Shown: positions 24,101 to 30,100 of the stretch, piece by piece
Numbering within the stretch: position 1 is the first letter of the stretch
How the letters are laid out: every line of letters starts with the position of its first letter
Assembly: GCA_977030845.1 (NCBI GenBank)
Contig: OZ365114.1
Location: 22,010,001-22,074,000, forward strand
Direction of reading: 5' to 3'
From: Fimbriosthenelais zetlandica
Lineage: Eukaryota
Length of the DNA stretch: 64,000 bases
Position numbers and translations under genes: made by a program
The notes under the pieces: model-generated
Seen by the model: only the letters and a program-made list of their open reading frames with translations
Told to the model about the DNA's origin: nothing
The model's database searches: none

Positions 24101-27100
24101 GGAGACGAATGAGAGAAGACAACATGGATTTTAACAGTCCAAAGAGGAAATTCTTCGAAAGGAAGGACTCCAGGGTTAAATATAACCGTTACGACGCCAG
24201 AAAGGACAGAGACAGTCGTGGCTCCATGATTGGTCAAAGCAGTAGTCGACCCAAGGGTAACTCACGTCCACACTCTGATCACCGTGATCGCAGCATGAGA
24301 TCGTCTAGCAGAGAAGCCCATAAATATCCAAATGAAGATAAAAGCATTGAAGTAATGGCTTTTGGGAAGAAATATAAACCTGCAGAAGTGGAACAGCTTA
24401 GATACACCAGGGATGACCTTTACTACCAGAAAGCTTCAGATAAAGACAACCATGCGACTGAGGACTCTCGTTACAGTAAGTCTGGGGTGGAGAAGTATGG
24501 AGATGATGCTGAACACTTCATCAGTAAATTAGTAAAACCTACTGGCTCCTCAATTTTCAGTTTAGTTTCTGGCATCGCATCAAGAAGCAATGGGAAGGAT
24601 GATATGTGGAAAGAAAGGGATGTAGATCGGTTTGAATCAGAACCTAGAAGTGAGGAAAGAAAGTATGGGAGAAGATCCAAATCGTCCATGAAAATCCCCT
24701 CAGACAGGAACAGGTATTCCAGTGACTATAGCAGAGAGGCGAGTGAATGGAATATGATGAAACAGAGGGAAAAGCTTGGATTAGATGACAGTAGACAACT
24801 GCCTTCCTCTTATGAAAAGCGATATAACTGGCAAAGCGCTGAACGGGATATGGGGATGGGCCGCATGGAGAAGAGCCGAGAAAAATCCAAGGAGACAAGT
24901 GGGAGCTTCAGTTTCCTCCATGGAGGTATGTTTCCTTTCATGGACGGTGGAGACAGGGACTGGTCCATTCAGAAAGGGGACGCACGTAAACTCATGAACA
25001 AGGACAGAGGTTGGTACAGTTCTAAGGAAAACCGTGGTATGTTTATGAAGCCCGAGCTATCCAGAAGGGATGACAGAGATAGTAAAGATATGAGGCATAA
25101 GAAAGTCAGAATGTCAAGAGGACATGGTAGCAGATCATCAAGGCACTCCCGAGGCAGATCCAAGATGCCAGCCACAGCAGCCAGAAGAAAAATGAGTGTA
25201 ATCAGGAAGGACTTCCTTGACATGTCAAGGGGCAGGTACTATTAAGATCCAGAGTGTTGCTTTTCTTTGATTTAATATTTATGATACTGATCTATTATGT
25301 GTATCTAACTGGTTACATCCAGGAATAATCAGGTTGCCGCACTAAATAGATGTTACATTGTAAATAGTCCTATATATTTTGAGTACCTTAGAGTCATTTT
25401 CAAATTCTAATATATTTTCTCTCATATATGTAAGCTTCAAAATACAATATACGATATATGGAGGCAATTTGCACGGAGAAAATGTGTTCCATAAGTTGGC
25501 ATAAAAAGAAACTGTATTCTGCTAATGAGCTTGTATTGTAACGAAAATATCGCGATGACTGTTTTTCAAAGTAAATGTAAAAAACATTTGCTTTCATGTG
25601 ACTGACTGTGTGAATGATATGTAATGTGAATGATTTTGTAATGAAATAAAGAGTAAAATATCCTCCAAGTGTTTTACTGATAAAATACTAGATTTTAAGG
25701 CTGAGTCATGTCAGTGATCATTTATCTGAAACCTGAAACCATTTATCTGAAGTCCCAGACCCAAGGTCCAAGGGTGTTCACTGGAGTTTTAACCAACTAT
25801 CATTAACCCATTAGATATGATCCTAACACAACCCACATGCCCTCCCATCCATCTTCCCAAGTATGTAGCGGAATAAAAATTATGTTCGAATTATTCAAAT
25901 TCTCACAAACACAACCTCACGCACGCTCTTCCTTTCATTTCAAAGTTCAACTTGTGACCCATGTCTGTATCTGTGCGCTCTTCAGAGCCTTACGGTTATA
26001 TAACATCCATCTATATTGACACTTTAAAAACAGACACACCATCTCCATGTCTTGATATGCTAATCTATAGGCCCTCCAGATACACCTGGATTCCCTGGCC
26101 ACACAATGCTTTACGACTACTCATTATCATTCATAACCATCTCCCAGGAATCTACATAATTATGCATGAATAACATTATCCTTGAATCTTGTATATAACC
26201 ATGAAACGTCGTAGAGTACGGATTCAGATCTTGGGAAGAAGTTGGACTTACATCAAGGAAGAGCGTAATATATAAACCAAGACTATGGAACAGTTAGTTG
26301 TGTTCCTATCTTTATTGGGTTGCGTATTAGGATATGGCATGCAGAATGCAGCTTTTGGTCACGGCGGTGTGGGAAACTTGGGTGGCTATGGAACCGAACA
26401 GGGAATAGGATTTCCCGATTATGAAACCGCAATAGGTTCACATGGACAAGATCATAGCCATGGGCACAACCAAGGGTATGGACAAACTTCTTATAACCAA
26501 GTTCCCCATGGTAATGGACAAGGCAATTATGGCCAGGGACAAGGATCGTATGGTTCGTATGGACAAGGACAAGGACAAGGACAAGGACAGTATAACCAAG
26601 GACATGGTTCCTACCAAAGTAGTCAGAGATCGTACAAACCCTCAGCTGGTTCCTACAGCGGTAACCAGGGATCTTATGGACAAGGTCAGGGATCTTATGG
26701 GCAAGGTCAGGGATCTTATGGACAAGGTCAGGGATCTTATGGACAAGGTCAGGGATCTTATGGGCAAGGTCAGGGATCTTATGGACAAGGTCAGGGATCT
26801 TATGGACAAGGTCAGGGATCTTATGGACAAGGTCAGGGATCTTATGGACAAGGTCAGGGATCTTATGGACAAGGTCAGGGATCTTATGGACAAGGTCAGG
26901 GATCTTATGGACAAGGACAGGGATCTTATGGACAAAGTCAGGGATCTTATGGACAAGGTCAGGGATCGTATGGAAAGTCATCCTATGGGCACTCATCTCC
27001 TAATTATGGTCATTCCGATAATCAAGGCTATGGCCAGGGCAACGGGGGCTATTCCCAGGGTGGATATGCTGATCAGGGAGATTATTCTGGGGGTTATGGT

Positions 27101-30100
27101 CAGGGAGCACGTAGCTACTCAGAAAATGAACAAGGTGGCTACAACCAAGGTGGCTACAACCAAGGAGATTACAGTCAAGGCGGTTATGGCCATGATGGTG
27201 GCCAGCAGGGTGGTTATGGACAGAATAACGGCCAGCATGGAGACTATGTCCAGGGTTATGGCCAGGCACAGGACGGGGCTAGTTATAGTGGCTATCAACA
27301 AGTAGGTGGAGGACAGGGCTACGGCAACACCAATACAAAAGAGATCTACATCTGAAGGTACAGTAATCCCCAAATTTCTTCTTTATATCACTTGTCTTAA
27401 ACTCATGTTTTAATTTGTAGAATTTCAAACTGAGCTATGAATTGAGTAGGATGAAGGCTATATGGGGATTAATTATTCACAGAAATCCTGATCAGATGCC
27501 AACACATGGGGTGTGGCTTACTCTGAGAACAATACATTTCTTGGCCCTTTCATCCATGAATCGCTGGGGTCAGAAGATGCATTTATGACATGTATCTATA
27601 AATATCTAACGGTACCAATAGGTCCCAGGCTCGAGTGATGAGATTTAACAAAGTATGTTCCTATGACACCATAATTCCAATATTCTAACCATAGTAATTT
27701 TAAGATTATCCAAGATTATCCAAAAGGAAAGGCAGAATACCATTTATTTATAACATTATAATATGCTCGACGAAATGTATTAATTTAGTTCTTTAATTGT
27801 GTTATTTTTTCCTTCTTCAGATACAACTAATAAATTATGATGCTTTTCCAACATCCAAGGAATAGTGGAGGAAAAAAGCTTCCATAACAATTGATATGAC
27901 TTACTAAGTAACACAGAAGATGTCCATCATTTATAGATCTTCAAATTGACTTTCTTTTTGTTGCTGAAAATCTAGGATATCTAACAGTAAAAACATTACT
28001 TGTAACACAGTAATTTTATGAACCTTTTATGTAATATAATTATTCGTATATCACATTTTTTATCGGAAGATTAAAGTTTAAGATAAAAATCAATGGTTTT
28101 GTCATAATTATATAATGTGTATTTAAGTTTAAATAACTTCTATGTTCAGATATGTAATATTCAACCCACCTATAGGGCTGGGGGCAGTCACACACGTACA
28201 TGTCCTCCTTGTCCCTGCACGTACCACCGTTAGTACAGGGACTGGAGGCACACTCATCCACATCCGTCTCACACAACCTGCCTGCAAAACATCAAACCAG
28301 CATTTTTAATTAACATACGCTTCTCATCTTTATTGCTAACGTTTAAGGATTGATTTTGGGGCCAAGTCCTGTTGGGCATACCGAGTAGGTGTGAGGAAGA
28401 ACGTGGCCATGACTTTAATGGCTTGAAATCAGAAGTGATTAAAGTAATCAGTATGCACCGAGGAGGGAATAAGGTGAATGGAAAGGAAGTTGCTATAATA
28501 AAGTAAATCTAATTTGCATACCGACTTGAAAGAGACTTCTTAAAATCACGGTATACGATTAAAATCTAGCATTTTAGCTTTCTACGACCTGATAAATTAA
28601 TAACAAAATTAACTTCATCTACTCACTTTACAATTATTAATTGATAATCTTTATGCGGTTAAGATGTGTTATTTGTGAAGCTTTAATCTTTAAGTTGTAG
28701 TTTGTTAATAATGTTTGGGTCGCGGGTAGCTTAAGCTGCTTGTTTATTGGATGTGGTTTGACAATTAAGACTAAATCTGTTTGATACTTTGATCTGTCCA
28801 GGTTACTTAATATTTGGCTTGGTTGAGCTGATTAGACATGTAATATGGATCCATGCGAAACACACAGAGGTAACATGTAATAGGCAACAGTAATTTATTC
28901 CTGCACTACATATTCTATGGACTATTAGTTCTCGAAAGTATTGTGAAATTAGACCTTTGGGCTTTAAGCCGAATCATTTCATTGGCTTATATGGTTGCAT
29001 TGCTTCAAAATTGGGGTAGGCCTTCGGTATATCCCTGACCTCATTGTTTTCACTGATCTAGCATAGAATTTCTATTCTGTATTTATAAAACTGGTATTGT
29101 TGAATGTTACCTGTGTATCCCGCACGACAGATGCATGTATAGCCATTTACTCCATCTATACATGCAGCACCATTACGACAAGGAGAAGAACTACACTCGT
29201 CCACGTTAGTTTCACATAACAAGCCTGGAAATGTGAATATGAGGTGGAAGAGCGTGAAAAAAAGAACATCATTCAGACACATAGACATGATGGCTTGTAG
29301 TTGAGGTGAGTGTTCCTTTTCACTTCCTGAGAATTGTTGCAATGCAATATAGGTATCCAAAAAACTGCATTTGTCCACTTGAGGTATTGGGTATAGGATA
29401 TCTCGGGATTCAGTGAATTTATGTGCTAGACATAGCAAGCACATCCCATTCTTGCCCAACTGTCAGATGTAATAGTCCAATATTCCAACTTTGCAACACA
29501 CAGCTTTTGAAAACGCTTGTAAACTTCCCACCATCCACTGAATGCATAAAGCTTGACACAAAAACCCCTGAACATAAACAATGGGGGCGTTTATTGGCTA
29601 GCTATGGCTAGACTAACTAAAGTTAATGCCATACATGTATGTTTGGGATTTTCGTTGCTATGACAACGTTTCACACACTCTGCACATCATGCGCATTGTT
29701 CTCAGCCCCTCAGCTGTTCCCTCAAATGTTACTCACTATAGCCATGCTCTTGTGCATTCTAGCCATAATAATATACCCTTCAAACTTGTACAAAAGTTTT
29801 TCTAACAGATTAAAATGATATATGGACTGAAAATGCATTACCAGTAGTACCAGGCAGACAGTCACAACGGTGGCCAGCCAAAAGGTCAACACAGATTCCT
29901 CTATTATAACATGGTGCACTGGCACAGTCATCAAAGTCCTCTGCGCACGTCAAGCCTGAAGTTGAAATAACAATAGTTTTGTCAATTGTTTTTGTCAAAA
30001 GCATTAATTTTTAATATATTGGAATATAAGAAACAATTCCTACCAGTATAACCGTTTTTACAGAAGCATTGGAAGCCTCCTCCTGCCCTCACAACACACC

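Follow-up and report, generated by a model that had tools for sequence, protein, structure and literature searches.

The locus and its genes

The DNA examined here is a stretch of 64,000 nucleotides (nt) of Fimbriosthenelais zetlandica (assembly GCA_977030845.1, contig OZ365114.1, positions 22,010,001 to 22,074,000 of the forward strand), and this whole stretch is referred to as the window hereafter. The subject of the present analysis is an open reading frame (ORF) of 356 codons on its plus strand, which lies antisense in an intron of a large host gene and encodes a chain rich in Gly, Gln, Tyr, Ser and Asn. It is probably a single-exon gene, and is called the G/Q/Y gene below. The host gene is composed of a signal-bearing first exon, many EGF exons, a Ser/Thr-rich exon of 1035 codons, and laminin-G exons; it is supported by Pfam matches to EGF and Laminin_G, and in its layout it resembles eyes shut. 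Three plus-strand genes are nested in the introns of this gene: the G/Q/Y gene shares one intron with a second single-exon gene, and a TRIM-NHL gene lies between the laminin-G exons. The positions of all these features, together with those of two genes found at the corresponding place in a related assembly, are listed in Table 1.

Table 1. Positions of the features in the window and of the two nested genes in the related assembly
Feature	Position	Strand	Basis or remark
Complete single-exon coding sequence (G/Q/Y gene)	26285..27355	+	Uninterrupted ORF, 356 codons plus TGA
Putative TATA box, TATATAA	26192..26198	+	93 nt 5′ of the ATG; presumed function
Initiator-like motif, TCAGATC	26224..26230	+	Candidate, from sequence
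Predicted signal peptide, residues 1–16	26285..26332	+	Heuristic hydropathy; cut after VLG fits the −3/−1 rule
N-terminal degenerate G/Q/Y/H/S/N region, residues 17–127	26333..26665	+	Translation, repeat finding, codon usage
Short perfect GGACAA run, 4.8 copies	26561–26589	+	Within the N-terminal degenerate region
Homogenised array, 15 units of 21 nt, QGSYGQG, residues 128–232	26666..26980	+	Unit-by-unit dissection
C-terminal degenerate G/Y/Q/N/D region, residues 233–356	26981..27352	+	Translation, repeat finding
GGYNQ-type 15-nt repeats	27131–27173	+	Within the C-terminal degenerate region
Putative AATAAA polyadenylation signal	27829..27834	+	474 nt past the stop codon
Host gene, EGF/mucin-like/laminin-G	about 36.5 kb down to about 1.1 kb	−	ORFs, Pfam
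Host intron holding the G/Q/Y gene and its neighbour, both antisense	21051..28039	−	Limits are those of the flanking minus-strand ORFs 20676–21050 and 28040–28276, which contain EGF exons, not mapped splice sites
Neighbour single-exon gene, signal-like N-terminus, R/S/D/K/M-rich chain with MDRG-type repeats	23590..25245	+	Same intron and orientation as the G/Q/Y gene
TRIM-NHL gene, intact, single-exon, 664 amino acids	8523–10517	+	Nested antisense in the host gene between laminin-G exons
First nested gene of the relative, 781 amino acids, hydrophobic leader	L018 9983–12328	+	
Second nested gene of the relative, 329 amino acids, clear leader	L018 18224–19213 (ctg39005 record 2107216–2108205)	+	

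Coding evidence

The reading frame is preceded by an in-frame TAA (26273–26275) located four codons ahead of the ATG, and the start context has A at −3 and G at +4. This frame is the only one that is stop-free through the N-terminal, array and C-terminal segments. Outside the array, the GC contents at codon positions 1, 2 and 3 are 0.62, 0.46 and 0.38, respectively, and such a falling gradient is typical of coding DNA. There, Gly, Gln, Tyr and Ser are encoded by mixed synonymous codons (all four codon types for Gly, and both for Tyr and Gln), and thus the repeats are maintained as protein sequence. These coding signatures indicate that the ORF is probably a real gene. As to the upstream region, the TATA box is to be read against a background of 2.08 TATAWA occurrences per kb within the window; the A of the initiator-like motif is located at 26226, 34 nt past the start of the TATA box, and transcription from this putative initiator would give a 5′ untranslated region of about 59 nt.

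The 21-nt heptad array

The sequence-only reading of this DNA had noticed 15 near-identical QGSYGQG units in the ORF, and the dissection of the array bore this out: 10 of the 15 units are equal to the consensus CAGGGATCTTATGGACAAGGT at the DNA level. Four others carry a single substitution each, three of which are synonymous (GGA to GGG twice, and GGT to GGA) and one of which replaces Gly with Ser, while the 15th unit has decayed to QGSYGKS. Tandem Repeats Finder reported the array at 26666–26974 with a period of 21, 14.7 copies, 96% matches and a score of 583, and the array is far beyond chance expectation. The same variant is found in units 2 and 5, which suggests the duplication of a three-unit block. 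When the 447-Mb assembly was searched for the 21-mer with at most two mismatches, 14 copies were found at the locus and one elsewhere; the latter is a chance match with two mismatches, and a reversed control pattern gave none. Since the 21-mer is confined to the locus, the array seems to have grown in place, and not to belong to a dispersed minisatellite family. The 15-unit array is judged to be a recent local expansion.

Composition, leader and predicted structure

The N-terminus of the protein has a hydrophobic core of 13 residues (residues 4–16) with small residues at −3 and −1 of the predicted cut. The 15-residue mean of the Kyte-Doolittle hydropathy has its maximum, 2.24, at residue 4 and never exceeds 0.03 elsewhere; as this last value is also the maximum beyond residue 25, there is no transmembrane segment past the predicted leader. 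AlphaFold2 places a helix at residues 2–18. The signal-like N-terminus claimed from the letters is thus consistent with the hydropathy peak, the small-residue cut site and the structure model. When the chain is cut behind Gly16 as predicted, the mature protein has 340 residues, a mass of 34.5 kDa, an isoelectric point (pI) of 5.5 and a grand average of hydropathy of −1.42.

The mature chain contains 32.9% Gly, 19.1% Gln, 13.5% Tyr, 11.8% Ser and 5.3% Asn (83% for the five residues together), and neither Cys nor Trp. Lys (0.9%), Arg (0.6%) and His (3.2%) are scarce, dibasic processing sites were not found in it, and short His-bearing stretches are kept close to both array ends. Gly accounts for 25–44% in every 80-residue window of the chain. 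The regular spacing of Tyr in [G/S]YG contexts, another claim of the sequence-only reading, was also confirmed: 31 [G/S]Y[G/S] triplets were counted, and in 18 cases one Tyr follows the preceding Tyr at an interval of exactly seven residues. The term prion-like, which had been applied to the protein, holds for the composition; it does not hold for the architecture, which is not of the FUS type, and the protein is predicted to leave the cell.

AlphaFold2 run without an alignment gave a mean predicted local distance difference test score (pLDDT) of 53, with values below 50 everywhere except in the leader and the array, and the protein is taken as disordered in solution. In one of the five models, the array (residues about 130–230) is ordered, with three-residue strands every seven residues at a pLDDT of 80–90, and a Foldseek search of the PDB found no solved fold like this array model. 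Perfect repeats tend to yield over-confident regular structure models. For this reason the beta model is deemed unreliable, and it hints at most that the heptads could stack.

Sequence relatives

Pfam assigned no family to the 356-residue protein at E values up to 1. When 5.8 billion proteins were searched by a word index, seven matches were obtained, which are composition-level resemblances to unrelated proteins. The best of these seven are metagenome proteins in which near-identical heptads form a tail behind an N-terminal domain that is conserved and unrelated. Three of them from JGI metagenomes (P0001, P0002 and P0003) form a small secreted family, probably from microbial eukaryotes: a conserved N-terminal domain of about 190 residues, for which no Pfam match was found, is followed by a C-terminal tail of QG[S/N]YGQG heptads almost the same as those of the window array. 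The likeness between these tails and the array is judged to be convergence. A homology search with the non-repetitive N-terminus, a check that had been proposed together with the orphan claim, was carried out as an exhaustive phmmer search of residues 1–125 against 1.84 billion representatives, and it gave only one spurious repeat match and no homologue. The look-alikes found in the atlas, with scores of at most 0.84, are arthropod glycine-rich cuticle or keratin-like clusters and a "prisilkin-39-like" cluster; these are leads only.

In the genome of the window itself, the matches of the protein elsewhere involve the repeat region only, and the inspected loci are open minisatellites or unrelated low-complexity exons. 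One giant 21-nt minisatellite was seen in contig C1 (5457178–5465499, continuing to about 5472300), with at least 396 copies and 89% matches; it is open in several frames, and on its minus strand there is an ORF of 2752 codons made of PGHNYP[S/I]-type heptads. The protein is thus single-copy and has no detectable homologue in these searches.

Positional counterparts in a related assembly

The mutual positional relationship among the host exons and the nested genes was examined in a relative, the ENA assembly ERZ25767047, in which the corresponding region lies on the 3.1-Mb contig ctg39005 (L018 denotes a piece of this contig). The orthologous intron was reached from the counterpart of the TRIM gene, which is 54% identical, by exact look-ups of small called ORFs. 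The host exons on both sides of the intron have counterparts there: the window exons starting at 20269 and 20676 correspond to L018 4030–4308 (67% identity) and 4735–4902 (61%), and those at 28040 and 29058 correspond to 20806–21003 (53%) and 21477–21629 (59%). Between L018 4735–4902 and 20806–21003, two single-exon ORFs were found, antisense to the host gene and in the order and orientation of the window. The closest relative (Logan ERR14368249/8; TRIM 81% identical) has short contigs, among them one of 14 kb that ends before the intron, and yielded no counterpart; in a third assembly, ERZ26222911, the gene list alone has TRIM followed by laminin-G exons.

Eleven GYGKSD-type hexapeptides occur in the 781-residue protein of the first nested gene, with contents of 17% for Gly, 12% for Ser, 10% for Asp, and 9% each for Tyr and Lys. 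In the 329-residue protein of the second, His makes up 24%, Gly 23%, Asp 13% and Tyr 6%; its C-terminal tail is hydrophobic and could be a glycosylphosphatidylinositol-anchor signal. Both genes have a TATA box 61–72 nt ahead of the ATG and poly(A) signals past the stop codon. When these are taken together with the two genes in the window, a TATA box is found 61–93 nt ahead of the ATG in four of the four nested genes. In the window's own genome, no other copy of either the G/Q/Y-type or the His/Gly-type protein was found.

The two genes of the relative are called in the contig index, and their exact sequences are absent from a collection of 15 billion proteins, as is the genome of the window. 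Homology searches in this collection can thus miss low-complexity genes of such a type; blank searches therefore say little on close relatives, and the orphan status in sequence is weakly shown. The description of the gene as an orphan stands insofar as no sequence homologue was detected; it is qualified by the incompleteness of the databases and by the secreted low-complexity gene that the relative appears to carry at the orthologous intron position. In short, the gene is apparently an orphan in sequence, and not an orphan in position.

Interpretation and alternatives

The explanation that we prefer, with a probability of about 0.5, is that the locus is a TATA-driven single-exon gene for a secreted, disordered and mildly acidic silk-like protein of about 34.5 kDa, which would set into an extracellular material. 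The ORF, its composition and repeat, the coding signatures, the uniqueness in the genome and the positional conservation have been shown; transcription, secretion, condensation, cross-linking and the kind of material served are what we infer. The mechanism is drawn from what is established for Tyr-rich low-complexity domains and for the biomaterial proteins of worms and molluscs (PMC4944945, PMC12621633, PMC9465683). The leader would direct the export of the protein. The Tyr residues placed every seven residues may act as stickers and the Gly, Gln and Ser residues between them as flexible spacers, so that a dense phase could form in secretory granules, held together by these stickers and by hydrogen bonds of Gln and of the backbone. 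After its release, the protein would set into an extracellular material, such as a cuticle, a jaw or bristle matrix, a tube lining, an egg coat or a glue, by beta-rich packing with Tyr and Gln hydrogen bonds, probably with oxidative Tyr cross-links in addition. Because charge and His are nearly absent, a role as a polyelectrolyte coacervate partner or as a metal binder is argued against.

As to its history, the locus appears to belong to a pair of secreted low-complexity genes that evolve rapidly and have kept their place in one intron across related species. The simplest reading is that such a pair was already present in the intron before the two species separated, and has diverged past recognition; an independent gain of a nested pair in both lineages is also conceivable.

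Several results weigh against the interpretation given above. BLASTP detected no significant similarity between the window proteins and the two positional counterparts, and Smith-Waterman comparison with locally shuffled controls gave z values of 2–4, which are within reach of the shared xYG motif; common descent is therefore not proven. The n-region of the putative signal peptide has no basic residue, and the leader was called by a hydropathy heuristic. In this low-complexity DNA, other frames are also partly open, the +2 frame for 287 residues and an antisense frame for 237 residues. Finally, the structural role of such proteins is not readable from sequence.

The product may instead be a secreted low-complexity protein of a non-structural kind, for example, a glycine-rich precursor with an antimicrobial role in defence, a lubricant of the mucus or hydrogel type, or a soluble protein that carries or chaperones other matrix proteins. 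This is possible though rather doubtful: it draws on the same predicted secretion and composition as the structural interpretation, but 340 residues with strictly periodic Tyr are suited to self-association. Glycine-rich peptides with known antimicrobial activity are short and in most cases cationic; the absence of dibasic sites, the low Lys and Arg contents and the pI of the mature chain speak against a role in defence. It is unlikely, and somewhat more so, that the ORF is silent or very young, that is, a proto-gene in which a minisatellite and G/Q/Y-biased DNA happen to be open and in which the start, the TATA box and the AATAAA are chance matches. The failure of the word-index and phmmer searches to find a homologue, the two further partly open frames and the richness of the genome in open minisatellites, including the array of contig C1, speak for this reading. 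However, a single frame stays open across all three segments, the protein motif outside the array is kept while the codons vary and the GC gradient there is of the coding type, and the hydrophobic leader coincides with the first ATG that follows an in-frame stop codon. Moreover, the relative, with a TRIM protein of only 54% identity, has a gene of the same layout at this position, and the TATA box recurs at −61 to −93 in all four nested genes.

The composition of the positional counterpart raises the question of whether the protein is a diverged member of the His-rich, zinc-binding worm jaw proteins such as Nvjp-1, which would harden a jaw by metal coordination. The counterpart of 329 residues with its signal-like N-terminus is Nvjp-1-like in composition, and the window protein keeps His stretches near both ends of its array; but its His content is 3.2% and its densest stretch has four His in 20 residues, against the eight or more of the criterion for His-rich regions (PMC13120676), and this origin is accordingly improbable. 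A still more remote proposal is an intracellular FUS-type phase-separating scaffold, whose hydrophobic N-terminus would not be a signal peptide. The triplets and the share of the five residues would suit such a scaffold, but Pfam finds no RRM, RGG, zinc-finger or other domain in the protein, the 13-residue hydrophobic core stands right at the N-terminal end and has a cut site of small residues, and the neighbour and the positional counterparts also begin with such leaders.

Returning to the secreted silk-like protein, the interpretation can be extended further, in a form that we regard as speculative. The eyes-shut-like intron might be a cradle, conserved in position, that houses two genes for secreted biomaterial proteins with complete sequence turnover between related worms (G/Q/Y/S in the window, and jaw-protein-like His/Gly/Asp in the relative); the window protein might be an extracellular counterpart of the FUS-type sticker-and-spacer condensate formers, its heptads stacking into regular beta structure on setting.

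Neighbouring genes and side observations

The neighbour gene in the same intron has 12/24-nt MDRG-type repeats at 23815–23957, a TATA box at −77 and an AATAAA 400 nt past the stop codon, and Pfam found no family in its protein. The TRIM-NHL gene is syntenic in three related assemblies, with identities of 81%, 54% and 51%. Farther downstream on the plus strand, at 56765–59078, a three-domain multicopper oxidase of the laccase-like type was found, the best named relatives of which are siboglinid annelid laccases (32% identity), followed by those of molluscs. Taken by itself, this points weakly to an annelid; atlas searches with the oxidase and with a piece of COX1 were uninformative on the taxon. 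Its C-terminal HCH motif (near 58893–58928) reads HCHVMRD, with Asp four residues on, where the type-1 copper His is normal. A functional link between the G/Q/Y gene and this oxidase 30 kb downstream was considered and dropped, as distance alone is no evidence. In the mitochondrial contig C79 of the assembly, COX1 (L019 1330–2898, minus strand) contains 10 in-frame TGA codons and has AGA at an expected Ser, in agreement with the mitochondrial code of invertebrates.

Significance

Proteins of this kind are widespread as components of animal materials. If it is expressed, the G/Q/Y gene would add one more lineage-specific building block to the invertebrate materials. Its design is exceptionally clean, in that the chain is free of Cys and carries Tyr at each seventh residue with only Gly, Gln and Ser between, and it could serve as a simple model from nature of Tyr-driven condensation outside the cell. 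The gene pair appears to keep its place, orientation, single-exon layout, leader and TATA promoter while its sequence and composition are replaced. Because the position is kept despite the replaced sequence, orphan calls made by sequence search can mislead for low-complexity proteins. Such a history of positional conservation and compositional turnover is interesting and unproven; the gene product remains a prediction, and the current understanding of such proteins is unchanged.

Comparison with known systems

The spider major-ampullate spidroins have GGX and GYGQG-type motifs, and short motifs such as GYGQGQ are present in their repeat units. Unlike them, the window protein has neither a spidroin N-terminal nor C-terminal domain as judged by Pfam, and no poly-Ala blocks, and it has 356 residues against several thousand; the likeness is judged to be convergent. 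With the low-complexity domains of FUS, EWS and TAF15, it shares the G/S/Q/Y composition, the dense [G/S]Y[G/S] triplets and the predicted disorder. However, the members of that group bind RNA, are nuclear, and contain RRM, RGG and zinc-finger parts, whereas the window protein has a secretory-type leader and no Pfam domain, and no homology to them was found in the word-index or phmmer searches.

The cement proteins of sabellariids, Pc-1/Sa-1 and Pc-2/Sa-2, are secreted and have Gly-rich, Tyr-bearing repeats, the Tyr of which is partly converted to 3,4-dihydroxyphenylalanine and cross-linked by catechol oxidase (PMC12621633). The window protein, which is predicted to be secreted, resembles them in such repeats; it differs in that they are basic proteins with repeats rich in Gly, Tyr and Lys, while its pI is 5.5 and its Lys content is 0.9%. 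The GYGKSD repeats of the 781-residue protein of the relative recall these sabellariid repeats. Nvjp-1 of the Nereis jaw is a 38-kDa protein with more than 25 mol% His and 35 mol% Gly, and is rich in Tyr and Asp/Glu (PMC9465683). To the His/Gly-rich, zinc-binding proteins Nvjp-1 and Nai11527, the window protein is similar in predicted secretion, Gly richness, the presence of Tyr, disorder and size. It differs from Nvjp-1 in its His content (3.2% against more than 25%), with Gln in place of His as the second residue. The 329-residue counterpart is closer to Nvjp-1 in composition, as compared through the published description. A match to Nvjp-1 (ACD31683) was absent from the whole-protein and N-terminal searches, in which no direct comparison with Nvjp-1 was made.

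The closest correspondence is found with the silk-like structural proteins, an operational class with many independent origins that includes uncharacterised annelid proteins (McDougall, Woodcroft and Degnan 2016, PMC4944945). The class is defined by a signal peptide, the absence of a transmembrane domain and at least 25% Gly in an 80-residue window (PMC4944945); since it is polyphyletic, membership implies no homology. The Gly windows and the absence of a transmembrane segment place the window protein within these limits, and its putative leader was judged by hydropathy and AlphaFold2, where the class uses SignalP. Like the members of the class, it has a predicted leader and no transmembrane segment, and is Gly-rich, repetitive, lineage-restricted and fast-evolving; the Gln content of 19% and the strict Tyr heptad are unusual there. 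The best reading is that the window protein is a further example of this silk-like structural kind.

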